From positions 6,510,001 to 6,574,000 of the forward strand of contig CATNEN010000029.1 of NCBI GenBank assembly GCA_950097015.1: 64,000 nt of DNA, read 5' to 3'. The translations under genes were made by a program, and so were the position numbers. The notes beneath the pieces were generated by a model. The model was not told the origin of the DNA. It saw only the letters and a list, made by a program, of their open reading frames with translations, and ran no database searches. The DNA comes from Macrostomum hystrix (Eukaryota > Animalia > Platyhelminthes). Positions 3,197 to 43,430 of the stretch are shown here, in pieces (position 1 is the first letter of the stretch; the number at the start of each line of letters is the position of its first letter).

Positions 3197-6100
3197 ATGT
3201 TACTTAACAAGATCACCAAAACAAGTATGCTATAAAAAATAGTAATGTTTCTATTTTTAATCTGTGATTTAAAACATACCAAAACGCAGGATAAGGCTAA
3301 TTGTTACAAGTGCATGCGCTTCACAGATAAAAGCGCATATATGTTAAAGTTGATAGAGATGCTATAGAGATAATGTTAGACATGATACAGAAATCTAGCA
3401 GAATACAATCAGACATAGGAGTATCGACTCAAGAGCTTCGTGGGCTGTACGGTATGGGGCTGGCGGCTAAGAAACCGACCAACTAGCCGGCTCTATAAGC
3501 AGTGACAGATGATCTGTCTGCACTGGATCTGTATATTGGATCACAGATGACAGTGATCCTACTATACTTTTGCACGTTGGAAACGCTTAAATAATGGGAG
3601 TACAAGTGACATATATCGTTGCGTTAATGCATTATTAGTGCGACAATGAATTTGTTCAATATCTATATCCCGTTGCCGTTACAAAGACAAGAAACAATAT
3701 AGTTTTTCGCAACGACTTGCTTGATGAGCAATTTAGACGTTTCTTTTGGCACTCAATTAAAAGCAAAACATTTTCAAACAACAATAGAAAATAATTGAAA
3801 AACTTAATATATGAATATTATTTTTTATTTATCAAAAAAAACTTTAAAACAAAAACTTGTTATAACGCTATAAGTTTTAAACTGCATTTTTCTTGCACTG
3901 TTTACGCTTTGCCGTCTTTCTGTGTAAACGAAGTAACTCATTTATTTTAGTGTCATTTAAGTTATAGAATTATATCAAGGGTTGCATTAAAATACTCCAT
4001 AAGTATGGGTGCAACGGTTGGGTACGATCTAACGTAGTCATTTATCTAAATGTATCTGAATTTCCTTTTTAATTTTACTCGTAGCAGCCAGCTAGATCCT
4101 CAACTTCTGAACTTTATTTTGTTGTGCAATAAGTTATGCATGTGCGGTGCATGCTTCTTATACAGAAAGTGTCAATCTTCGTCAGGTATTATGACAGTGA
4201 GGATAGTTTAAATGGATGTTTCAAGAAACATGCAGCGAAGGACGAATCGTGAGTTATATGCATTTAGCTTGCCTGTTTATTAAGTACAATATTGCAGCTA
4301 TTAGCATTGTACAGCAAAAGTTTTTCCAACTATTTCCTATTTTCTGAACTGCATTGTAGCTCAGGCAAAGCCAGTAAAGGACTAAAGAAGCTTATATACC
4401 TACTAGCTAGTTTACTAATGGATAAGTCATGAAGCTAGGATATTTTTGCATAACTGCCATGTAACAGCATTTCATTTAATTTTTTAACTCAGATTTGATT
4501 TGGTCTGAATTTGATCCAACTAATCATGTCACATTATCTGTCTTTGGCCAAAACAGTAATGACAGTCATTCTAGTTAGTTATTGAACTTCAAACATTCAC
4601 AATAGATAATAGTAAGTTATGTAGAACAGAATGGCACTGAACACATTAGTGAAGTACAGCCACCACCACCACCGCCACTCTTCAAGATGACTCTAGAACA
4701 GAGCATTTGTGTGCTACTCATGTTCCAAAATTTGCATTTTGCTATGCATGGTCCAATTCAAAATCTGTGGTTCTGGCCATAGACAGATGACATGGCATGA
4801 CTATTTTGATCAAATTCTGACTATCACTATGTGATGTGATTCAAACTTTAAGATTATTATGTGAAACAGACTAGAATTTTGCCACATATATAACAAATAT
4901 ATCAGGGTAATTTAAAATAGTAAGAACTAAAAATAGGACTACAATGTCAGGTGACACTACTCCCTGTTGAATTTTATGATGTGCTAGGAAAAAGGCATAT
5001 GAATGTCTTGTGACACGCATCCTAGACACTTACAACATGTCATCTTACAACTTTGTCATCGACATCCACTTGGAAGGTAGGATACTTTGTCATTTAGCCA
5101 ATTGGCATGCTTTAAAGTTTGGTCAGTTCGTCCTCTACTAATAACAAGCAATCAAGTTTGTCATCAATAAAGTGAGGGCGGGTGGTGGGGCAGAGGTGTT
5201 AACACACTTCACACTCTAAATTGTCAAAAAGAGGTGTCAAAACTGATTTCATTATAAGAGTTGAAAAATAGGTGCCAACACAATGTGAGGAGGGGTGGTT
5301 CTGTTCTAACTTTGAAAACTTGTTTTATAGATAACAAACTGTCCACAAGTCTAAGTCTAAGTCTAAGTCTAAGTGTCTAAGTGTCTTTGTCATCTACCCT
5401 CTGAGATATTGGACAGATCATCATATGCTGACAAAGTTGTAAGATGACGATGACAAAGTGTCCAAGTACCTGTGGCACAGTTTTCTACAAATATGCCAAT
5501 AGTATTAATAAAGAAAATACAATTAAAGCTTAAGTTGGTATAAAATTAATTTTTTACTCAAATTTCTGTCACATCAGTACCATTTTCATGGATAAATGCT
5601 GACCATATACACAAAATACCAAATCAGATCAATGGTATTTGAATTTCAATATAAGTTTATAGCAATGTTTTAGCTTGTTTTGTAATATTATTATTAGCTA
5701 TGATTTTTTAAGTGGACACACAAAAAACTTTAAGATATTAAACTGTTAGATAAGTAAAGTTGCAAAATCTGTTTATAGTTGTTCATTCTTGCCATTGCTT
5801 GTTCACATATAGTTGCCAAGCATTTTTGGTGCTTAAAAATGTTTTCTATACCAAGCTCGGTCTTGCTTTTTACTAATGTAATTTGGTTCCTAGGTTGACC
5901 AAGGCTTTAGCATCTGAAACACAATTAGGCCTATGTTACAAATATGGAAGAAAATAAAAAGTTTTAACTTTCTGGCTAAGTTTCTTATTTCCTTAATATT
6001 TTAAAGTTTAAATGCATTGCTTGACTACATCAAAATAGCTTTGTTTTGAGTTTTGTTTTTTTCTTTACTTACACAGGCACTTGTTTTATTTGATGCCATA

Positions 6101-9100
6101 CAATGTATATTTGTTTTGCATTTATCAACTTGCAAGTGTAATATACTGCTTTCTTAGTAAGCTAAATTAAAATTTCAGCCAAATTTATTTTCCTCTATTC
6201 ATATAATTTTAGTGTAACAATACACATTTTAATTCAAGTTATTTTACAATTCTACACTGAGTATTTGTTCTTTTTTTAATGGGGCTTACATAATTGCTCT
6301 TTTGGAAAGTGCAAAATATTTACTTCTTCTGAAACAAAAATTACTGGATAATTTTTTCCCTAATCGCATGTGTTGCATTTTTCTGAAAGTATTCCAACCT
6401 GGCAATTTAAATATAGGATTTTAGCTATACTTTTATTGAGTCAATGCAGTCAATCACATGTTGATATAGACCAGGGACTAGTAAATTCTTGACTAAAATT
6501 TCTAACTCTAAATTATAGAAATAATTTTTGTATTACAATACCCATAGACTGTAATATGATTGCAATTTAAAAAATGTACTAATTTTAAGTTGCTTTTTAG
6601 TTACCTACACATGCATTATGCCCACCATAGTTCTGTTTATTGCAATAACTGCAATATTTATGGCTTTGCTGCCATCATTAATATGTGCACTTTCTTTAAC
6701 CCTACCCTATGCTATAAAATAAATAGTAAAATATTTTTGCTGTTTTTGTTTCTTTAAAAATAATTGTAAATATAAAATATTGATTTCATTTATCTTAACT
6801 ATTTTTATGTTGAGTCTAATGACTTGGTGACTATAGATAAAATAATAATAGATATATGCCATGTTTCTAAAACTTTGTTGGCAATTTTGTTTTATACATG
6901 GCTTTAATTTTAAATATTCTTTTAATAAACACAATTCCTTTTTATCAGGTCATTACCTGATTTCTTTTATGCTATTATGATAGTTGTATATTCCATTATA
7001 ATTTGCTGTCTATCTAAACACTATATAATCATATATTCATTAGTTGTCAAGTATGAAAAATGTAAAATATCAACTTAGCCTGCATTGTTAATTTTTTAAA
7101 GAACACCAACTGTAAATAATTTGTATAATTTCAGAATCTACTTTATTAGTATTTTAGTCTTTGTGAGCTTATGTACAAGTACTTCTATTATATCACAAAT
7201 TTTAGGTAGAAGAGCCGATTTCGCATCAGCTGGAATTTCTCCTGAAGATGGTAAAGGCCAATGTTTGATTATTATCATTATTATTTTTCTTATTCTCTAA
7301 AATTTTAAAGCATTATATAAGTAACTGAATTCCCACAGAGCCGGCCGAGTTGCTGCGCAAGATCAGCGAAACATTTCTCAGTCGCAGCTCGGAGCCCTCT
7401 CAAATTCTGCGCAAAGTACACGTGTGCAACGCCCTAGTCCGCATGACTAAGCGAATTAAAGCCAATCTTGTATCTGACGATTTGTTTTGCAGGTGAGAAT
7501 AGCTATTTAAATGGTTTGTTGTTATTGTTAAGACAATACATTCGCTTTGAGAGTTACAACTTAACTAAATGAATAAAATATTTCAGTCTAATCCCAGCAT
7601 TCTTTCAAGACTGTCGCGAGGTACGCGCCGCCGCTCTGCGTTGCGTTAGAAAATTTCTTACAGACAGAGCTGCCACTGACAGCTTTTATAAATTCAATTT
7701 CGATCTATGCGTTGCCAAGTAAGCGATTTTTTATTTACTTAAACATTTTTATCAGTAGGACATTGTACACAGTTTGCATATAAATGCTGATTGGCTCAAC
7801 CAACAGGTGCCTAGATCTAGGCTGCCTAGACGAAGAGGCCAGCCTGGCGCCATTGTTTCAAAGCGAGCGCTTTCAGGCTGTGAAACTCATCCGACAATTA
7901 ACCAGAGTCAGTGGCAGTCAGATACCGGCTAGCCTGGTTCAGCCTCTGCTAGCTATCTGTCGCTATACGGACCGAGAGGATCGACGAGACCAGCTCATGA
8001 AGGTTGGTCCTGCTTATTAAATGCTCAGTTAGAAAAATGCCTCGAGTATTCATCAGAGGTTGTAGCCCAGTGGTTAGGGCGTCGGACTCACGACTTAAAG
8101 GTCGGGGGTTCGATTCCCGACTCCACTGGAAAAATTTGCGTCCTTTAGCAAGACACTTAACTCTGCATTGCTTCAGTTCACCCAGCTGTTAAATGGGTAC
8201 CAGCATCAGCTGGGATAATTGAAGGTGGGTGTGGCGTCCCCCCAGTCCGTGGACTGAACAGCTGTACGCAGCCTTCAGATGCGCCGCGCATTAGCTGCGG
8301 CTGTGCTGTCGGCTGCACATTTGACCCAATTGGGGCAGGTGTAATCAATTATTATTATTATTATTATTCATTCTAAAGACTTGAGGCTATAAAAAGTACA
8401 CTGCTGAATGTAGCATTGTCAAAACAGGAATTATTTTATAAATAATGCATTCATTGTAATGATATAAGTTCAGTCTGTTTGCGATGCTTAAACTCGCCGC
8501 AAAGTTAATTCTATGACCTTAGTATCGACTACTATTAGTAGCATGCGTAGTTAGACGTAGCCTTTCTATTTTCCCTAAGAGCTATGCATGTAGATCTTTC
8601 TACTAAGTAATTTAACAGTAGAAAAACCACTGGGATATTTCAAATACCCACATACCGCAAAACATAGGCATAGGCATCGTCGAGATATTCAACAATTCTC
8701 GACGTGGTGTCTTCGGAATCAAAAACTACAGATATAGGCATAATTTTTCTGCTCACAAAATATCATTAAGTAACAACGTCGCCATCATTGTTAACTAATT
8801 TAGATTAGTTTAATTGTTTTTTTACCCAAATGGATTCGCCATAGTGGTTCATACAGAGCAATGTTAGTTGTCCTTTGTCACCAGGGTGTCCGACAAGAAT
8901 CGCTGAATGTCTCGACGATACTGACTTTGCTTTACTCAGCTTTGAAAGTTAAGTCGTTCGTTTTGGGAGCTATCGTAGAGTATGCAGTGGGTATTGGAAA
9001 TAGCCCGGTGGTCTTTCCCCAGAGGTAAAAATAGCTCGGTCTTTCTACTGTTAACGCATCGATTTGTCTAAATATCACATGAGTCACATAAACAATGAAT

Positions 9101-12100
9101 TACTTAATTAAATCCTAGGCTTCCCTATACCTGCTGGCCGAACTGGGCGCTCTAAATCCATCCCAACTGGCCGGTAGTGGAGCACTTAAAACGGTTCTGC
9201 AGGCAGTTCTGGACACTAGCCTGCCGCCCAGGTGCACAGAGGCATTAGTTGGCGTCCTGGCGCATCTATTAAATAAGCCGGATACTCGGCGCTACCTGAG
9301 GCCGCTGCCCGAATCGCTGCACTGTCTGCTCAGTCCGTTAACTAATCCTACCAGCTGCCGTTCTGGTGACGGACGCCAAGCCGTTCTCTGCCTATTCCGC
9401 ACGTGGCCCGGCCTCCTATCACTGTCGCCGCGTAGCCTAGTAGGCATGCTATTTGTCAATAGCGAAGAGGCTCGCTCTGCGCTTGTTGATTTCTTTTTCG
9501 ACCTGTTCCTTGTGCCTAAGCCGCCATCTGGCGTAACGGAATTTAGCGAAGCCATCAGGTAAATAAATAATACTTGTTTGTTTGAGAATGACTGCTCTCT
9601 GAGACCGGCCTCTGATAGTTTTTTTAGAAAGTGGTTTGGAATTTATAATTCTTGCTAAAGCATTCTAACAGAAACTCTTGACTTCTGTACCAATAATCAA
9701 ACCAAAAATTGTTTCGCAGGTGTCTGTATCCGTCCGACGAATCCTGGGATCTGACTGAAGGCTTCGTATCATCTGAAGGCTGCGATCTATTAGAATATAG
9801 ATGTCCAACTAGGCTAAACCTACTCGAGAATCACCTGGCCTTTCTGCTGCACCTGTTTGTACAGTGCGGCCTAGCGCATGGTCTATCCAGCTTACTGGCT
9901 GACAAAGCCTCCGATCAGCTGGGCATTCGATGCGCCTTGTTGCTAGGCGAGCTGACGCATCGCAGTCGACTCCTGCCCGCCGCCCTGCGCTCTATCGGCT
10001 CCGCTCTCAGCGCCCCGGCTCTGTTGCGAAATCAGCGCGCCCTGCACTGGCTGGCTGCGGTGCAGCGGGCTAGAGAGAAGCCGCCACCGCCTAGGAATGT
10101 ACTATTGGCGGCGCTAGTTGCTCAGGTGCGATCTTTGATGATATGATTGAATGGGGATGAGGGATGGGAAAATCCCCCCACTGACCTTTTTTTTGCTGAA
10201 AAGCAAGCACACGAAACCTAAGAACATAGGCCAACATTTTGTTGCGTTTCTTCTGAAACAATAATCAAGTCACCAGCTCTTCAGACCGTCGAGATATTCA
10301 ATGGTTCTGGCCGAAGTTCAGATTTTTCCCATAAGCGCTAGTGTATTTCATATAAACCCCTATACATGAATTGGTACTGCGCCTCAGTGCGGCCTTGCCA
10401 GGCCTTCAGAATTTATCAGCATGTCACACGAATGTGCCTGCATCATCTCCGTCTTCGGTGGTCGCCTACCTTTATCTAGACGGACTGCTGGACCTTCAAG
10501 GGCTACAACAGGTGGAACTAGGCAACTATGGACACCCTGACGCGAATTTCTCCAATTTCACTGATCAAGCCTAAATATTAGGCGCAGCTCAACCACAGGA
10601 CACCCTCGCCTAGTCTGTGACCAATTAGTCACTACCCAACGCTGTTAGAATTCGGGACGGGGTAAATTTTCAGGGGGTATAAAAGCGGTCGGCAAAATGG
10701 TTTGGTAGTCCTACTTTTAAAGCGGCGTTATGGAGTCGTTTCAACGGCTTTTCTAACGACAAAAAAGTTATTTACTTTTAAGCGCTTTTATCACACTGAC
10801 TAAAGAGTAACCTTTACCTCGTTTCATTTATTATGTTTTTTTACAATACTCCTAAATACACTACCCACCTTATCTCAATTAGCCCAAGCCGGTCAATGCC
10901 TTCGCTACGCCGGCTGCAGCCTCCGCGGCCGCCTCAGCTTCGGCCTGCGCATCGCTGGCCGCCTGTCCAGACGACCCGGACGACTGGGCCTGGCCTGAGA
11001 TGCTTGGTCTAGTACGCTGCTGTCTACAAACTGATGCGCCTACCGATTACGGATCCTCTGTGTCACTGTCAGCATCAGGCGCCGCCTCATTGACCGCCTC
11101 GGCTGATTGGCTGGCCGCTGCGCGTCGCCTGTGCGCTTTCTACAGCCCGCCGTCCAGCTTAGCAGACAGCTCGCCTACCAAACCAGTTGCCTTTCTGACA
11201 ATGCCATTGAATTGGCACCACGCTGCTGATGCCTACCTCACCGGTGTGGAGCTCATGCAACTGCTAGCTAGACTGCCAGACTCCAGCGAGCTGCACAAAT
11301 GCCTCATCAGTCTAATTAGTGACCTGTCCGCCCACGTGCGCAACCGACTAATGCATTCGCCTAGCCTCCTCATTAGCACCTGCGCCAGGTACGCGCCTGG
11401 ATTCTTAGGCGCCCTCACTGCGTCCGAGCGCGGTGAAGAAGCGCTTGAGGCTTGCAACGCTAAGCAGCTGCTGTTAGAGCTCGTTTCAGATCAGGCGCAC
11501 ACGTACTTTCCCAAGCTGGTGAGATTTGCCAATACAACTCTTACTTGTGCACTATTGACTGCTGAAATAGGTTTAACAGAGTATGCGGTCTCAAAGTCTT
11601 ATTGTTATAAAATTAAATTCATATTGTACCTAACATTAATATGGCCCTTAGCTCGATTCTGCGGCAAAGCCAAATTATTATTTCGTAGGCTCTTGTTGTG
11701 TTGCTTACGCCCATGAGGGCAAACCTAAACATTAAAAGCACAGTGAGAGTGTACACTGCCTGACAGTGTGTGCATGTGTGCTCAGGAGTCAGCTAAACTG
11801 GTTAGAACTGCCTCTCACTAGCTGCTTCAAACTGTTTTTAACTGAAATGCGCTAGTACTCAGCCCTCCTGAGAACATTAATAATTATTATCATTACCGAA
11901 TTTGCCTTGCAGGTATTGGCCACCGTAGACTATACTAGAAGCGGCGGGTTTGGCCGTCTGCTACTTGCCAAAGCTTTGAGCTCCGGCGATGAAGAATGCA
12001 GACTCTACGCAACTCGCCTAATGACTGTGCTGCTGCGAGCCGATATGCCATTCTTTGCCAACTGGGGCATTGAACTGCTAGTCAAACAGCTCTATGATAC

Positions 12101-14629
12101 TGACTCTGCGGTGCGCAAGGCCGCAGTAGCCGTACTAGAAGAGGCCTGCGAACTCGAAGTCAACAAAAACATTCTAGTGCGCCTCCGACCAGCGGCACTG
12201 CACCTGGGTGATCAAGGCGCCATGCTAATTGCCAAGCTGTGCGGCTTTAGCCTAGGATTTCGAGTACTGCAAGAATCTAATTGGTTTCAGCAGCACTTCG
12301 ATTTGTGGTGCTCTCGTCTATGCAATGCCTATCCGCTTCAGGTTGAGCACATGCTCACGGAGGCTCTCACTGGCTATGATCTACCGCCGCCTGGTCAGGA
12401 TTTTGTGCGCGCCTCTTCTAGACCAAAATCTGCGCCAAGGTATGCAGCTGTTCTACACATAAAATACTGCCAGTTTTCTCTATCCCATACATATGGGATA
12501 TTTGTCTAATGGGATTATTATGCGATACTTACAGGCGCATTCTGCTACCGACGCACCTGTTCAGTCAGCTGGCCCTGCACAAAGAGGGCTTCGATTTTCT
12601 TCGCGGCCAAGCCTGCGTTCGTCAGGCTGTTGATCTAGTCTATCAGCTGTTAGAGCCTGGCCAGCGACTAGAAACAGAAGCAGAAATTGTGGCCGCCAAA
12701 GCAGCCGTCTGGTCTCTGGGTCACATTGGCAGCACAGCCTGGGGCCTTCCGCTGATAGAGCAAGACCAAGTTGCTCCAGCTCTGGCTATGCTAGCTGAGC
12801 GATGCCCTGTGCTGTCTGTGCGCGGCGCCTGCTTTTGGGCCCTCTGTTTGGTGGCGGCCACTGAGCGTGGCTGCGCCCTCCTAGCCGAATTAGGATGGGA
12901 GGCCCTGCGCAGCAACCGTAGCCAGCTCTATCCTGTGGTGCTATCCCGGCCGGATCATTTGGCACTGTTGAACCCGTCTTGGGCACAGTCAGCGCCTCTC
13001 AATGGCACAGAGTCTGGCACTGGTGATAGTTGGCGCCTATCGCAGGACTCCATCATCATGGGCAATGGAAGTCGGACTAGTTCAGTTGGCAATGCTGAGA
13101 ATAATTTAGTGAGTCGCGAGCTTCTAGACCAACTCTAATTTTATCTTTACTTTAGTGAGTAAAGATTCTTAAAGATCAAATATTTTTATAAACACCCCAA
13201 ACTGACAGGGCCGGCCCCATTCTCTATCGGCAGCGTCCTGCGGTGGGCATCATCGCTGGCACGTGTCGTCTGTTGGTCATCATCAGCAGCAGCAGCAGCA
13301 GAATCTTGATCAAACTCAGGGAGGAACGCCATCGCGTAAAGCTCGCAGCGCAAGCGCCAGTGAATGCGATCACGCATCCGGTTCGTCGGTTCACACCGTT
13401 TTGCTGGCTAGCGACCATCCGGCTGATGCTAATACTTTCAATTCTGGAGCCGCTGCTGCTGCTGCTGCCGCTGCAGCGGCCACTGTTGCAGCTGGAGCAT
13501 CTGCACAACAGCCGTTTCAGCTGCCCAGCTCTGTGTCTACCTGGACAGGCGGCACGGCTAGAGCTCTCCTGTTGCAGCAGCAACGAGCCGCTCTGGGCAT
13601 TGTCGCGGGCTCGCCTTCAATGAGCGCTCTAGACGGAACTGGCGCTTCAGCCGGCTCCACTCTGTCTCTGCCGGGTGGCCTTCACCACTGCGGCTCTGGT
13701 CACCAGTCCGCCGCTGCTTTAACTAAGCGATGCGGTGCTACTGCTGGAGTTTTGTACCAATGTTTGGCCCTGCCTATCGATCCGAATCGCGTCACCCTCT
13801 GCTCCTGCTGCTGCGACAACGAATTGCCTAATTCTAATGCCGGCGTATCCGCCGCAACCGACTTGGCCGGCGGCTCCGGCGATGCTGGCGTGTCGGCGTC
13901 AGCAAATTCTATCGGCACCAGCGGCTACGCCAGTCGGTCCGATTCTAAGCCGCAGCTCAGCGACTCCTACGGCCTAAATGGGCGCAGCGCGGCGTACAGC
14001 GATGGTGGCGGCGGCGGCTCCGGCTTGGATCTGCACACCGACGAATCCTGCATCGCTTGCAGCCTCTTGGCTCACCGTGGTCTACCAACACCGCCAACGC
14101 CTTCAATAAGCGTTACGTCGGCTTCATTGTCGGACGAAGCTTCCATCGCTCGGGTGCGCCGAGAAATAGTGCAGCTAGTCGGCCAGCTCGCCTGTCATGT
14201 CAACCAGTCGCGAAACGAGGCCGCCCTAATTCAGTTAAAGGCTCGACGACCGGTCGCTTTTAGCCAAGATTTGTGTCTTTATTCCGAGGTGGCTCTAGCC
14301 CTCGCAAGGCATCCTTATTCGCGTAGGTCGCGCGCCTTCGTTCAAGATCTATTCGCTGACGCTTCCTTTGACATCGTGAGTTAAATGATTGTTGTGATGG
14401 GGTGTTCAGTATAATATTCATTAATCTTTTGATTATCCCACTCTTTTTGCGTCACTCCCAATGACTTTGGTCTCTATTAGCCCAAACTTAATTACGTCGG
14501 CTCTAAATAACCCTGCAACCTTCATTACTGACCAGCCCTTCATAGCGTTTTTGTTATAAATCAATCCATCCAGCATTTTCACTCAATACTTATTTTTCGT
14601 TGCAGTTGTACTCAATTCAAACGCCTTAG
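3197..14629 (+). CDS. RICTOR: Rapamycin-insensitive companion of TOR (mTORC2 scaffold), multi-exon
   Basis: Exons joined by hand with GT-AG sites and consistent phases: 3197-3224 (tentative first exon), 7206-7250, 7339-7492, 7587-7718, 7807-8002, 9119-9558, 9720-10125, 10883-11518, 11913-12439, 12535-13108, 13209-14375, 14606-14629. Rictor motifs: EVRAAALR, SWDLTEGFVSSEG, CRLYATRLMTVLLRADMPFFANWGIELLVKQL, KAAVWSLGHIGSTAWG, LSVRGACFWAL, the zinc site HTDESCIAC, and DLCLYSEV. Confidence 0.93.
8056..8370 (+). mobile_element. Full-length tRNA-derived CORE-type SINE in a Rictor intron
   Basis: A box TAGCCCAGTGG (8063-8073) and B box GGTTCGATTCC (8107-8117). CORE-like cctttagcaagacacttaactctgcattgcttcagttcacccagctgttaaatggg resembles the MIR core ccttgggcaagtcacttaacctctctgtgcctcagtttcctcatctgtaaaatggg. 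(ATT)n tail. Candidate TSD TATTCAT at 8047-8053 and 8365-8371. Confidence 0.9.
8616..9050. mobile_element. Non-autonomous DNA transposon (MITE) with TIRs CAGTAGAAA.../...TTTCTACTG flanked by TTAA
   Basis: TTAA at 8612-8615 and 9051-9054. Subterminal inverted repeat ccactgggatatttcaaatacccac / gtgggtattggaaatagcccggtgg. No coding capacity. The TSD could also be read as TA. Confidence 0.85.
10185..10600. mobile_element. Partial copy of a second inverted-repeat (MITE/foldback-like) family in a Rictor intron
   Basis: Collinear similarity to 25190-25690, e.g. tcttctgaaacaa.aatcaagtc.ccag, gaccgtcgagatattcaa, ccttgccaggccttca.aatttatcag, actatggacaccctga. Confidence 0.75.
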
Positions 14630-16089: not shown

Positions 16090-16635
16090 ATGAGCGCAGA
16101 GAAAGGCAAAACTGAGAAGGCCAGCACCAATGTGATGCGAGACATTCGCATCGCAAAGCTGTGCTTGAACATCTGCGTTGGCGAGAGCGGTGATCGTCTG
16201 ACTCGCGCCGCCAAGGTGCTGGAACAGCTAACTAGCCAGAGCCCAGTTTACAGCAAGGCCAGACTCACCGTGCGCTCCTTCGCCATCAGGCGCAACGAGC
16301 GCATCGCAGTGCACTGCACAGTCCGCGGCGACAAGGCCAAGGACATCTTGGAAAGAGGCCTGAAGGTCAAGGAATACGAGCTGCCCCGCTCGTGCTTCGC
16401 CGACAATGGAAACTTCGGCTTCGGTTTGAACGAGCACATCGACTTGGGAATCAAGTACGACCCCAGCATCGGCATCTACGGCATGGATTTCTATGTTGTA
16501 CTGCAGCGCACCGGCAACCGAGTCCAGTACAGGCGCCGCAAGCAGAACCGCGCAGGCCCGAAGCAGAACATCTCGCGGGAGGAGGCCATCAAGTGGTTCC
16601 AGACCACCTACGATGGAGTTATTATGAACCGCTAG
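16090..16635 (+). CDS. RPL11: 60S ribosomal protein L11 (uL5), intronless CDS, divergent
   Basis: [34 protein letters not shown] and [23 protein letters not shown] are uL5 signature motifs. 181 aa, full length. Confidence 0.98.
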
Positions 16636-17253
16636 AGCAATTAATGCACTGGAACGATAACTCTTTAAAAAAGAACCGTCTTGCTGATTGCTGGCTCTGA
16701 GTAGCTGATTGCTAGTACAAGTTGTTGGTGATAAATTCGTTTTTTGGCCGACTGCTTTCCTGGAAATTGCCTTTTCGGCGCTTGGCTGTTGTCTTTCTTC
16801 TTTTATTGGCTTTCAATTAGGCCAAAAATATTTTTGTAGATAAGCTATCAAAGCAAGTAATAATTTGTTTAAAAGAGTACTTGATAAAGAAAGGCTGTGG
16901 GCACTGGCACATTAATTGGTGAAAGTGGACCCGCAGCAAGCGGGGTGGTAATTATGCCTAATCCGCTGACTCCTGAGCATACACTCACACAAGTGTGTAA
17001 CATCTGCCCTGACTTTTTATAAGCAGTTACGTACTACTCAAGCCCCCATGCCTTCGTTTAAATAAATTAAATGTGGCCTCGCTGCAGATTCAAGCTTAGA
17101 GACACTAACCTGCCACCCGCGCCTCCAATTTATTAAATAACTATAAAGTTCAGTAGGATAAGTAAAATATTGCACACAATCCAAAATGAAAAAGTATTTC
17201 TTATTTTACATTTTCACACGTTTATTCTAGCACCGCCGCACAAACTGACGACA

Positions 17254-19757
17254 ATGTCTCAGCACGCGTTGCCTGTACTATTCGTTAATCTTGGCGGCGA
17301 GATGCTTTACATTCTGGATCAACGCCTTCACGCCCAGAAGATAGACAATGAGAAGGCGCGCAAAGTGCTGCACGACATTGTTGGCACAATGTTCAATCGG
17401 CGCTTCATGGAGGAATTGTTCCGGCCGCAGGAGCTCTTCACTCGCAATAGTCTGCGCGTACTGTTCGACCGGCTGGCGCACGCCTCCATTATGCGCCTGA
17501 ATGCGGCCAGTATGGATAAGCTCTACGACCTCATGACTATGGCTGTGAAATTCCAGGTCTACATGACTGAGCGGCCGCGGGACCTGCTGATGGTGTGTCT
17601 GAATCACCTGGACTGGGTGAGCAAACAGCTACAGGGCGAGGATAGTCCGGCTAAGCAGGCTCTGGTTGGCACCTACAAGCTGCTGGCTGCATTGGACAAG
17701 GAGTTGAACCACGGCGATTGGCAGACCTTGCGGCACTGTTTAATGAACTTCTTTCAGGTATGTGTTATGTAGGACCTATATTATCATACTTTCCAAGAAT
17801 CAGCTCGTCTCGTGATTCCGGAAATCAACTCCGCTCCCCTCTTTTTTACTATTAGACCCACTCTCCCCAATTCTTTAATTAGGCTCCCTCAAATGTCAAA
17901 GAATCAGTCCGATTCCTCCCGTTTCTAGAAATCAACTCAATGCTATCTATTTCTAAGAAATAACTTAATCCCAGTCAGTTTATGCAGTTGCTTAATATTT
18001 AGCATTTCTAAGAATCAGCTCTATCCTAGCCATTTCTTAGAATCAGCTCTACCCTAGTCATTTCTTAGAATCAGCTGTGTCAGTTATTTCTAAGAAGTAA
18101 CCGAATCGCATCCATTTCTAAGAACCAACTGAATCCAACCTATTCTATTTCTAAGAATCAACTCAATTAGCTATTTAAAAAATAACTTAATCACAGCAAT
18201 TTCTAAGAATCAGCTCTATTCCAACCATTTCTAAGAATTACCTTGATCCTACCCATTTCACAAAATCAACTCAATCATAGCCATTTCTTAGAATGAGCTC
18301 TATCCTAGCCATTTCTTAGAATTAACCTTATCCCAGCCATTTCTAAAATCAAATAAAAACCCCTTTTATCCCCCTTTTTTTAGAATCTAAGCAAGTGCTC
18401 ACCAAAAAGCCTATATTAGATTGAATTTGAAGCTGCCTAACCATTGTGTTTTAATTATTTCGCAATCATTTCATAATCATTTCGCAACTTTACCCGCTGC
18501 TGGCAGGACACGCACACACGAGTGTCCATCTTCCTTAAAGAGGGCACCCAGGACAACTCGGGCCGGTTTCGCCTACCATTTGGCGGCCCGTTGCCAGCCG
18601 GCTTTGCTCAATTGGGCAGCCTGCAGCTGTACACTAGCCGTGGCAAGGCCCTGCAGCCAGCCAGCTTCCCGGCCAAACAGTTCAACGGACAGAGTCGCGA
18701 AGGCTCCGTAGAAGTGCGCGGCGATCGCGTCACTAATCTGGGCTGCAATATGTACGCTGGTGGCCAAGTGGAAACATCCGCGCCTCAGTTGGCCGCCGGC
18801 AGTGCCGCTGATTCGCGCCCACCTCAGAAGCAGCGCAAAGGCGCCCCAGCCCCGCAGCTAGTTGCTGCGCCTTCGGATCTGGACAGCTATCAGGTACGAG
18901 ACTGTACTAAGCCGCTGGCAATGATAATAATAGGTGCAGGTGCACTCTCACTGTACACCAGAGGTTGGCCATAAATAGTGTGTTCTCCCCACGGCTGCAC
19001 CCCAAATTAATTATGGCCTCATCTGATTCTAGAGTCTGATGCGACAGTTCAGATAGCTAATTTACTAGGTATGCCAAAAGCATAGATTTAGACAGCCCAA
19101 TTTTAAATCAGCCGATAGACTTTGAAACCAGTCTCAGGTCTGTAGCTTATGGGACAAAGATTCTTTTGCCGTGGTTGCAAAAATATTCGCGGCAGATAAA
19201 AAGCTTACTTGTCCTCGCGTCATTGCGCTTTGCTATCAAACAAATGGGCAAATGGAGTCAACATGTCGCTGCACAATTTTCCTAAGAGTGACTCTACTGC
19301 CCGACAGATTCTCAAGAAAGACGAATGTGATAAGTGGCTTGTCCAGGAAATGTGAGATCTATGGTCGAAACCTGCCGCATTTTAGGCGGATCCCAACGCG
19401 GCCGCGCAGTTGGACCTCCTGGCACAGCTGATCGGGTCCGGGCAGCGCCGCTCCGGCTCATCCGGTTTCCGTCTGAACCTGTTCCGCAACGATGCCGAAG
19501 AGGAGGAGGCCGAATCAACCGCCGCAGCCAGGGCCGGGCCAGCCGCTGTTGGCGATCATCGAGTTGTTAATTTTGATGCCAGAGGCGCCGGCAAAGGCGG
19601 TCGCGAGCGACTTAGTCACGTGATGCGCGACTTGCGCATGGACGACGAGGAAGAAGATAACGATGACGGGCCTAACGGAAGCGACAGGCGGCGTGCGGGA
19701 CGCGGAGGTGGCGGTCAGCGCAATCTGCTCGACTTAATGGACGAGCAAAATGATTGA
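17254..19757 (+). CDS. OSCP1: Organic solute carrier partner 1 (OSCP1/NOR1), three coding exons
   Basis: Exons 17254-17757, 18507-18893 and 19386-19757, all phase 0. LPVLFVNLGGEMLYILDQRL, RLAHASIMRLNAASMDKLYDLMTMA and RVSIFLK..Q..SGRF match OSCP1. Confidence 0.95.
17900..18350. repeat. Degenerate roughly 30-bp tandem repeat (core ccatttctaagaatcagctc) in OSCP1 intron 1
   Basis: About 12 recurrences of atttct(a/t)agaa(t/c)ca. Confidence 0.8.
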
Positions 19758-24511: not shown

Positions 24512-24955
24512 ATGGTGAGCAAAATTATGAAGCCGGGGCGCGTCGTGGTGGTCCTGTCTGGCCGCTACGCCGGCCGGAAGGCATTTATTGTGAGAAATTA
24601 CGAGAAGTCGGGCTCAGAGGACGGCGGCAGCGGAAAGTCCGGCAGCGACAAGCGCAACTATTCCCACTCGCTGGTCGTTGGCGTCGATCGCTACCCGCGC
24701 ACCATCACCAAAAGCATGGGCAAGAAGCGGGCCCTTAAGAAGACCAAGCTAAAGCCATTTATCAAAATCATGAACCACAATCATGTCCTGCCTACCCGCT
24801 ACGTTGTCGATGTGACCTTCGACAGCAAAGTCGTCAATAAGGAGGCATTCAAGGATGCCGCCGCCAAGCGCAAGGCCATGGCCATGGTCAAGGGCCTGGA
24901 AGAGAAGTACAAGGCGGGCCGCAACAAGTGGTTCTTCACTAAGCTGCGCTTCTAA
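24512..24955 (+). CDS. RPL27: 60S ribosomal protein L27 (eL27), intronless CDS with a Gly/Ser-rich insertion
   Basis: MKPGRVVVVLSGRYAGRKA, YSH.LV.GVDRYPR, MGKK, NHVLPTRY and GRNKWFFTKLRF are eL27 signatures. Confidence 0.97.
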   Translation: MVSKIMKPGRVVVVLSGRYAGRKAFIVRNYEKSGSEDGGSGKSGSDKRNYSHSLVVGVDRYPRTITKSMGKKRALKKTKLKPFIKIMNHNHVLPTRYVVDVTFDSKVVNKEAFKDAAAKRKAMAMVKGLEEKYKAGRNKWFFTKLRF

Positions 24956-41759: not shown

Positions 41760-42026
41760 GAGAGGGATAGGAAGAAAGTGGAAGGGGGACGAAGAGGGAG
41801 AGAGTTGGGAGAGGGTGAGAGGTAGAGTTGGGAGTGGTTGAGAGTGTGAGAGTGTGAGAGTGTGAGAGGGAGAGAGGGAGAGAGGGAGAGAGTGAGAGGG
41901 AGAGAGGGAGAGAGGGAGAGAATGAGAGGGAGAGAGGGAGAGGGGGAGACAGGGTGAGAGTGAGAGGGAGAGAGGGTGAGAGAGAGAGGGAGAGAGGGAG
42001 AGAGAGAGCGGGAGAGAGGAGAGAGG
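41760..42026. repeat. GA-rich low-complexity tract
   Basis: Direct reading. Confidence 0.9.
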
Positions 42027-42082
42027 ACACTGCCCATTGAATTTCAAAAATCTAATGTTGGAATCGATTCCGATATGTATCG

Positions 42083-42192
42083 AAAAAATTGAAATCAGGA
42101 TTCGAACCAAGGCAACTCCAGACGCGTTTCGCTCTTTTTGGAGCTCATCAGTAGAGTCTAGCCTAGCGCTCTAGCCATTAGGCTATAGGCGC
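42083..42192 (-). ncRNA. Candidate Pol III (type 2 promoter) transcription unit: tRNA-like 5' half, hammerhead ribozyme, B box, T6 terminator
   Basis: Minus strand: GCGCCTA TAGCCTAATGG CTAGAGC G CTAGG CT AGA CTCTA CTGATGA GCTC CAAAAA GAGC GAAAC GC GTC TGGAGTT GCCTT GGTTCGAATCC TGATTTCAA TTTTTT. A box 42185-42175 starts at tRNA position 8, B box 42108-42098, first run of 4 or more T at 42088-42083. Confidence 0.7.
42114..42158 (-). ncRNA. Minimal type I hammerhead ribozyme
   Basis: Complete core CUGAUGA...GAAA...GUC. Stem I ACUCUA/UGGAGU, stem II GCUC/GAGC with loop CAAAAA, stem III AC-GC-GU (palindrome ACGCGU). Predicted cleavage 3' of the C at + coordinate 42121. Confidence 0.9.
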
Positions 42193-42315
42193 TTGTTCAA
42201 ATTCAGCTTTCAATCTCAACATATCGTAATCGATTCGGCAGCGCCCCGCAACTCAATCCATACTCACTCAACTCCGTGGCACTGACTCGGTCGTACGAGA
42301 CGCCGGTGCTGGCCT

Positions 42316-42835
42316 GAGAGAGAGGGAGAGAGGGAGAGAGAGCGGGAGAGAGGAGAGAGGGAGAGAGTGAGAGGGAGAGAGGGAGAGGGAGAGGGGGAGA
42401 GAGGGAGAGAGGGTGAGAGTAAGATGGAGAGAGGGAGAGATGGAGAGAGGGTGAGAGTAAGATGGAGAGAGGGAGAGATGGAGAGAGGGTGAGAGTGAGA
42501 GGGAGAGAGGGAGAGGGAGAGGGGGAGACAGGGAGAGAGGGTGAGAGTAAGATGGAGAGAGGGAGAGATGGAGAGAGGGTGAGAGTGAGAGGGAGAGAGG
42601 AAGAGGGAGAGGGGGAGAGAGGGAGAGAGGGTGAGAGTAAGATGGAGAGAGGGAGAGAGTGTGAGAGAGTGTGAGTGTGAGAGGCAGAGAGACGAAGAGG
42701 GAATGAAAATGAGGTTGAGTGAGTGTGTAGGAGATGCATTGCAAATATATATTAGAAACACAGATAAAAATAAAACTGAGAGAGTAGGGAGAGTAGGGAG
42801 AGTAGGGAGAGTAGGGAGAGTAGGGAGAGTAGGGA
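42316..42835. repeat. GA-rich low-complexity/minisatellite tract ending in (GAGAGTAGG)n
   Basis: Direct reading. Confidence 0.9.
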
Positions 42836-43430
42836 GCCCTTTTTTAGTATTCGTATTTAATGCACAAGTTTAGGGCTGCAATGAAAATTCATTTTCATTT
42901 TTATGGTACATCTGTATCTGGCTCTCTTTCCTCTCAGGGAAACAAGAGTCTGAAATTTTTTAATTGTCTGCCAATCACCTCATGTTAAAATACTTTGATC
43001 GTGCATGTACAACTATGCCCAAAGTGTGTCTGTCCTATCATAGTAGTCTTAAGCCCCTGGGGGCGCTGGTACTCTTGCTTTCCTGATTACGGCACAGTAG
43101 CGAATACTTCTGCGGATCGCCGCACTTGATAAAATTCTACTCACGTTTGTTTCCTCTCTCTGTCAACCCACTAAGAACTTCATCCCTCTCCTGAGCTGCT
43201 AGATTTCTCACTCGAGTTCTTTTTCTAAGAATTTTGAGAAGCCGCAGTTATTCAGTGACAAAGAAACCCCTTTTGGTTCTCAGGCACTTAGAAGTTGTAC
43301 AATTGGTTTAGATATTTTAAGTGCTTCTGTATCTATAAAAGTACTTTGCCTTTTTTACACAAACCCTGCAAGTCGAGATCCTCGATGTACACCTGTTTTG
43401 GATGTTCTTCGTAACTTTACTCGTAGTTGA

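Follow-up and report, generated by a model that had tools for sequence, protein, structure and literature searches.

On the minus strand of the 64-kb window, by which we mean the whole stretch of DNA analysed, a hammerhead ribozyme lies between the internal A and B boxes of a tRNA-like RNA polymerase III (Pol III) promoter, and this cassette occupies the middle of a longer repeat unit. The element is one copy of a high-copy family, whose ends and copy number we inferred from contig depth. We consider the locus best explained as a solitary copy of an abundant, young, non-autonomous retroelement that carries a hammerhead, and we give a probability of roughly 0.72 to the full reading, in which the RNA of the element would be made from outside the boxes, copied by target-primed reverse transcription and cut as a dimer. 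The general kind is already known from Sm-alpha, from retrozymes and from the hammerhead elements associated with Penelope.

Read 5' to 3' on the minus strand (42192-42083), the cassette consists of a first G (42192), a perfect A box (TAGCCTAATGG, 42185-42175) beginning at tRNA position 8, the hammerhead, a perfect B box (GGTTCGAATCC, 42108-42098) overlapping the outer part of ribozyme helix I by 2 nt, and a run of six T residues (T6, 42088-42083), a potential Pol III terminator. The gap between the boxes is 66 nt, a spacing that intron-containing or long-arm tRNA genes tolerate, and T6 starts 10 nt past the B box without any T4 in between. The arrangement is that of a type 2 Pol III gene: A and B boxes in order on one strand, at a workable spacing, followed by oligo-T. 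The first-pass annotation had described a hammerhead between the A and B boxes and then an oligo-T, and the sequence together with an Rfam match (below) confirms this layout; the other features it listed, a G at 42192, an A box from tRNA position 8 and a T6 without earlier T4, are all present. The A-box consensus alone is found at chance level in the window (three occurrences versus 2.07 expected). The exact B box sequence occurs a single time in the 64 kb, and the hammerhead pattern (CTGATGAG..CGAAAC) once, with 0.02 occurrences expected. Unlike the A-box consensus by itself, the full set of motifs in this order on a single strand greatly exceeds what chance would give, and we rejected a chance co-occurrence.

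The cassette does not encode a tRNA. ARAGORN called none at this place, with or without introns, and a local scan with the Rfam tRNA model gave no match even at E 10; a cloverleaf with closing acceptor and T stems, as expected of a tRNA gene, is not formed. Given the lack of both an ARAGORN call and an Rfam tRNA match, we rejected a functional tRNA as well as an intron-containing one, in agreement with the original observation that the acceptor and T stems stay open and that the tRNA would not be functional. When ARAGORN was run with relaxed thresholds and on 352 versions from which the ribozyme had been deleted, it made spurious calls on the rod (see below) only, which are uninformative about the ancestral tRNA. 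A scan for bacterial promoters and terminators found nothing, bacterial models being irrelevant here. Elsewhere in the window we observed two copies of another tRNA-derived, SINE-like head, at 8060-8125 on the plus strand and 20962-20895 on the minus strand, with an A box (TAGCCCAGTGG in the first copy) and the B box GGTTCGATTCC. They are near-identical over about 60 nt, their tails diverge, and ARAGORN called neither of them as a tRNA.

The ribozyme (42166-42107, minus strand) was assigned to the type I hammerheads by an Rfam match, a pattern search and a fold calculation. All the core elements of this type (clan CL00010) are present, namely CUGAUGA (42151-42145), GAAA and GUC. Helix II is formed by GCUC/GAGC (4 bp) with the loop CAAAAA (42144-42131), downstream of which comes GAAAC-GC-GUC, and the predicted cut site is after C42121, i.e., between 42121 and 42120. 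Helix I has two parts, an inner ACUCUA/UGGAGU (6 bp) and an outer CUAGG/CUUGG (5 bp), with the internal loop CUAG/UGC. A two-part helix I, whose internal loop contacts loop 2, is the layout of the HH9 and Schistosoma ribozymes. At gathering thresholds, an Rfam scan of the whole window found nothing; a separate local scan below these thresholds matched Hammerhead_HH9 (RF02275) at 42169-42098, covering the full model with 40.1 bits (E 5.9e-9). The score remains below the gathering value of 52 because helix III is deleted. Like HH9, a hammerhead found in amniote introns, our ribozyme has a two-part helix I with an internal loop, and it matches the HH9 consensus letter for letter in the core and in helix II (CUGAUGAGCUCCAAAAAGAGCGAAAC). 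In HH9, however, helix III is closed, with 3 bp and a loop of 5 nt; our sequence lacks these five loop positions, which form the sole gap of the alignment. The context differs too, being a conserved intron for HH9 and a repeat in our case.

Helix III is minimal in this ribozyme, with an A-U and a C-G pair around GC (2 bp with a 2-nt loop), and the stretch ACGCGU is a palindrome. According to the energy model it cannot close as a hairpin in a monomer, and a helix of 6 bp is available only between two copies. The monomeric hammerhead fold without helix III is predicted at -11.1 kcal/mol and a competing non-catalytic fold at -17 kcal/mol per monomer, whereas the domain-swapped double hammerhead made by two copies is predicted at -30.3 kcal/mol, versus 2 x -11.1 for monomeric hammerhead folds. 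Most type I hammerheads of animals have a helix III of 1-2 bp with a palindromic loop of 2-4 nt, and act as dimers (PMC4209133, Cervera and de la Pena 2014). On the basis of the folding calculations, the present hammerhead is predicted to belong to this dimer type with a palindromic helix III. Since helix III is not closable in the monomer, efficient self-cutting of a lone transcript of about 110 nt is not expected. The sizes first proposed for the products of such cutting are arithmetically right: 72 nt (42192-42121) for the 5' piece and about 36-38 nt for the 3' piece.

It was also proposed initially that the cassette is a self-contained gene of about 105-110 nt. We found no support for this; the cassette is located in the middle of a repeat unit made of a 288-nt core plus a CT block, and inside an 18-nt inverted repeat that opens a rod. 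The core (42314-42027, minus strand) is not microsatellite and is predicted to be highly self-paired as RNA. Upstream of it lies a CT-rich block of about 46 nt (42360-42315), a near copy of the block of about 50 nt that lies downstream (42026-41977) and that may have been duplicated as a target or may form the tail of the unit. The same distinctive block, a variant with CCCGC, is thus found on both sides of the core, 336 bp apart, and the element as a whole sits within several hundred bp of CT microsatellite. The locus comprises about 1.14 units and is solitary: there is no tandem core, the 64-kb window contains a single hammerhead, and only the CT block is repeated. The two blocks could have arisen by a long target duplication or as a partial tandem, or could be the tail of the unit.

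The cassette is flanked by the arms of the inverted repeat (left, 42236-42219; right, 42078-42061, both on the minus strand), which are 18 nt long, 94% complementary and have 140 nt between them. In the predicted RNA fold, pairing of the arms extends inward as an imperfect rod of about 45 bp, 42236-42193 against 42108-42061, G-U pairs included. A hairpin domain at the 5' end of the element RNA (42305-42239) is predicted in both the minimum free energy and the centroid structures. In the predicted full-length fold, the B box pairs with 42204-42195 and T6 also pairs upstream of 42192; the A box is predicted to contribute one side of a local hairpin, UAGCC-UAAU-GGCUA, to which GCGC/GCGC pairing is added. 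Folding of the 278 nt between the microsatellites (42313-42036) gave -98.4 kcal/mol, with a z of -5.1 and none of 200 shuffles as good, so that at 288-336 nt the unit has both the size (170-400 nt) and the self-pairing of a retrozyme. The A box is reached 130 nt into the core, whose 3' end is preceded by T6, at a distance of 55 nt, and by a subsequent T5. Consequently, these boxes cannot make the RNA by which the element propagates: a Pol III transcript starting from them would lose about 120 nt at the 5' end and 55 nt at the 3' end, and could not reproduce the element.

The surroundings contain several long uninterrupted open reading frames on the plus strand, corresponding to RICTOR domains (11907-13138), RPL11 (16090-16635, 181 aa), OSCP1 (17170-17772) and RPL27 (24512-24955, 147 aa); the RPL11 and RPL27 genes look complete and intron-less, and a look-up of the exact RPL11 protein returned no record. 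The region 34000-64000 is occupied by long, strand-skewed, low-complexity tracts and CT/AG microsatellites, with a GC skew per 2 kb of up to +0.9 and down to -0.48. These tracts yield many spurious long open reading frames with Pfam matches of the Cornifin/PMG type. A 9-nt tandem repeat (GAGAGTAGG, six copies) is found at 42771-42842.

Evidence that the unit is repeated comes from sequencing runs, represented by assembled contigs, whose ends are not the ends of molecules. Runs from five coded organisms, as well as two environmental metagenomes, contain words of the 278-nt core. Two runs of organism A, each of about 45 million letters, were the most useful here, one guessed to be DNA (X2) and the other of unknown kind (X3). 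Overlapping contigs of X2 span the core and its junctions with the CT blocks at depths of 20-68, and break at variant positions; at the downstream junction their depth is 19-39. In X3, one 332-nt contig at depth 10 runs over 42009-42311 and has 2 differences. The upstream junction is spanned by multi-copy contigs of both runs. As multiple copies also exist of the junctions with the CT block, this block is either a part of the unit, as a CT-rich tail giving a period of about 336 bp, or a very specific target. One contig of X2 matches 42067-42185 and departs at 42185 into CT-rich sequence, and thus corresponds to a 5'-truncated copy adjoining microsatellite of a similar type. Among the contigs we saw no circular joint and no tandem copies.

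Our copy differs from the contigs at two positions. At 42137, in loop 2 of the ribozyme, three letters were read on the minus strand: A in this copy, U in X3 and in an RNA-labelled run (X12), and C in X2. At 42203 this copy has A on the minus strand, and X2, X3 and X12 all have G. Since all three runs at 42203, and X3 with X12 at 42137, share a letter that this copy lacks, the contigs represent the family majority and not this locus. The private letters at 42137 and 42203 could serve to mark the locus in read mapping. The contigs from several organisms are 95-99% identical to this copy, from which we conclude that the family is recent. The suggestion made at the outset of a retrozyme- or SINE-like family, akin in kind to Sm-alpha, is supported by multi-copy contigs, a hammerhead and Pol III boxes.

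Searches for more distant relatives gave little. A scan of metagenomes for the pattern A box - hammerhead - B box had no matches, and the pattern hammerhead - B box had two, both unrelated. One (L001) was rejected as a chance match in GC-rich coding DNA, and the other (L002) as a different hammerhead-like motif. The latter lies at 3842-3927 on the minus strand of an AT-rich metagenome contig (Ga0265297_10015416) and matches Rfam Hammerhead_3 below gathering (27.8 bits, E 7.6e-4); a hairpin resembling a T arm (AAGGTTCGAATCCTT) appears to lie within its helix III, and it is unrelated to the family with the 288-nt core. The exact hammerhead word had no match in collections of viral and prokaryote genomes.

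Parts of the element also occur in two runs from related organisms that were guessed to be RNA, a kind of library in which DNA can occur. In X12, a contig of 157 nt covers 42239-42083 with 3 differences, at depth 11. At the 3' side it stops exactly with the last T of T6, and at the 5' side it reaches 47 nt beyond the start proposed at 42192. The second run has a contig of 111 nt matching 42096-41996. The end of the X12 contig at T6 is ambiguous: it fits Pol III termination, and variation in the length of the T run among copies would match it equally well, the ends of contigs in such runs being found at variant positions.

Comparison with known systems places the element among several of them. 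Sm-alpha and Sj-alpha are SINE-like elements of schistosomes. Our element is like them in having a flatworm host, a high copy number, a unit of about 330 bp, Pol III A and B boxes and a type I hammerhead, whose helix II loop is CAAAAA/CAAUAA here versus CAAAUA in Sm-alpha and Sj-alpha. In Schistosoma mansoni, copies of Sm-alpha are called tRNA-Gln-TTG genes or pseudogenes by tRNAscan-SE (PMC2770079). Being callable as tRNA, these copies presumably have a contiguous tRNA-like head, with the ribozyme outside the head. In our element, in apparent contrast, the ribozyme splits the boxes, no tRNA can be called, the boxes are in mid-element and T6 follows, although the order in Sm-alpha is judged indirectly from the tRNAscan calls. 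Non-LTR retrozymes of animals measure 170-400 nt, form RNAs with extensive self-pairing and are joined by the ligase RtcB (Cervera and de la Pena 2020, PMC7229834). The present element resembles them in its type I hammerhead, in a size that falls in the same range, in its self-paired RNA and in predicted cut ends of the RtcB type. It departs from them in that retrozymes are defined by tandem copies giving unit-length circles, whereas we see one ribozyme, no tandem core and no circular joint, and in that retrozymes are not described with the tRNA-type boxes that this element has.

Penelope-like elements show 5' truncation, partial tandems, tails of 30-40 bp, a bias for microsatellite targets and hammerheads, and their telomere-attaching relatives have tails complementary to the repeat beside a hammerhead (PMC8557442); such traits extend to non-autonomous derivatives (bioRxiv 10.64898/2026.07.22.740005). 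Our element resembles them in several respects: its hammerhead is of the dimer type, with helix III reduced to a minimum, it is inserted in a microsatellite, one copy is truncated on the 5' side, and a short block recurs at both ends. The combination expected of a non-autonomous Penelope derivative, i.e., a microsatellite target, 5' truncation and a tail or partial tandem, is thus found in this family. The duplicated block is 46-50 nt long here and not 30-40 nt as reported, and no gene for a reverse transcriptase or a GIY-YIG nuclease is found near the element. Because microsatellite targeting, 5' truncation, the block at both ends and the hammerhead are all Penelope-like traits, we propose that the element is copied in a Penelope-like manner.

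We suggest the following history and mode of propagation. The middle of the core is a remodelled tRNA-derived module in which the A and B boxes are still perfect. The hammerhead occupies the region of this module from the anticodon loop to the variable arm, and outer helix I is built from the former 5' strands of the anticodon stem and the T stem. The propagating RNA would be full-length and made from outside the boxes, by read-through or by Pol II. This RNA would be copied into CT-rich DNA by target-primed reverse transcription, with an enzyme that an autonomous and most probably Penelope-like element provides in trans. Copying could be primed by annealing of a CT-rich 3' tail to the AG-rich strand of the nicked target, much as the telomere-attaching relatives of Penelope employ tails complementary to the repeat. 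Cutting by the hammerhead would take place only when two copies pair through ACGCGU as a double hammerhead. The boxes and T6 would give rise at most to a subgenomic RNA of about 110 nt, and would not act as the promoter for propagation.

Three other readings of the locus deserve consideration. A MITE-like DNA transposon of about 176 bp, ending in the 18-bp inverted repeats, is suggested by the 94% complementary arms that flank the cassette. Multi-copy contigs run unbroken past both arms, however, from 42009 to 42311, no direct repeat adjoins the arms, and the complementarity continues inward as a rod of about 45 bp with G-U pairs, which is of the RNA type. We rejected this reading, for which the chances are minimal, because contigs extend beyond the inverted repeats, which are thus not terminal. 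In a second reading, which is possible but rather doubtful, an extinct element has left the boxes and the ribozyme behind as debris, and this copy is inert. The copy is solitary and located in a gene-poor, microsatellite-rich region, and at 42137 (loop 2) and 42203 it has letters of its own in place of those of the family majority. Nonetheless, it retains an intact rod and ribozyme core as well as two intact boxes, and contigs with 95-99% identity in several organisms speak for a recent family rather than an extinct one.

The remaining reading takes the boxes at face value. TFIIIC would bind them, transcription would start near 42192 and stop in T6, and a hairpin-plus-hammerhead RNA of about 110 nt would be cleaved, alone or paired, into 72 nt ending in a 2',3'-cyclic phosphate and about 36 nt beginning with a 5'-OH. 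Such an active mini-gene nested in the unit is consistent with two perfect boxes 66 nt apart, intact although the cloverleaf is gone, with T6 only 10 nt past the B box and no earlier T4, and with the 157-nt contig of X12 that ends at the last T of T6. That same contig begins at 42239, which is 47 nt too far upstream, and its ends may equally be branch points of the assembly. In a young family, moreover, intact boxes need no selection, and conservation extends over a unit far longer than the cassette, with a rod that requires sequence upstream of 42192. We consider this reading unlikely on balance. The layout is also that of engineered tRNA-embedded ribozymes, in which a hammerhead is reportedly placed in the anticodon region and expressed by Pol III; these likewise have the hammerhead between the A and B boxes, but the constructs keep an otherwise intact tRNA, whereas here the tRNA body is decayed and the carrier is a natural multi-copy repeat. 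Less probable still, and in our view a long shot, is an extension in which the mini-gene works within a longer retroelement present in thousands of copies: the RNA of about 110 nt, with its half-competent hammerhead, would pair via ACGCGU with a second copy or with full-length transcripts, and would control in trans the cutting of the element and its ligation and circularisation by RtcB, releasing tRNA-half-like 72-nt fragments with a cyclic phosphate. Some points do count against the reading that we prefer, the non-autonomous retroelement transcribed from outside the boxes. The contigs showed neither a tandem copy nor a circular joint. The perfect boxes in a decayed tRNA module hint at retention for a reason, which is left unexplained if they are a fossil promoter.

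Since 1998, blood flukes have been known to contain repeats that carry a ribozyme together with boxes for Pol III. Animal retrozymes have been known since 2020 (PMC7229834). A literature search that covered few of the subscription journals turned up no account of a hammerhead placed between an A box and a B box. As a single copy, the finding is modest by itself. Still, the locus is a natural counterpart of the layout that engineers use for ribozymes expressed by Pol III, and provides a concrete, testable case. The element bears on how such RNAs are transcribed and on how dimer-type hammerheads are switched on in copies that are dispersed and not in tandem. The question that it raises is whether the boxes drive a short ribozyme RNA that acts in trans on the longer transcripts of the family, or are fossils.
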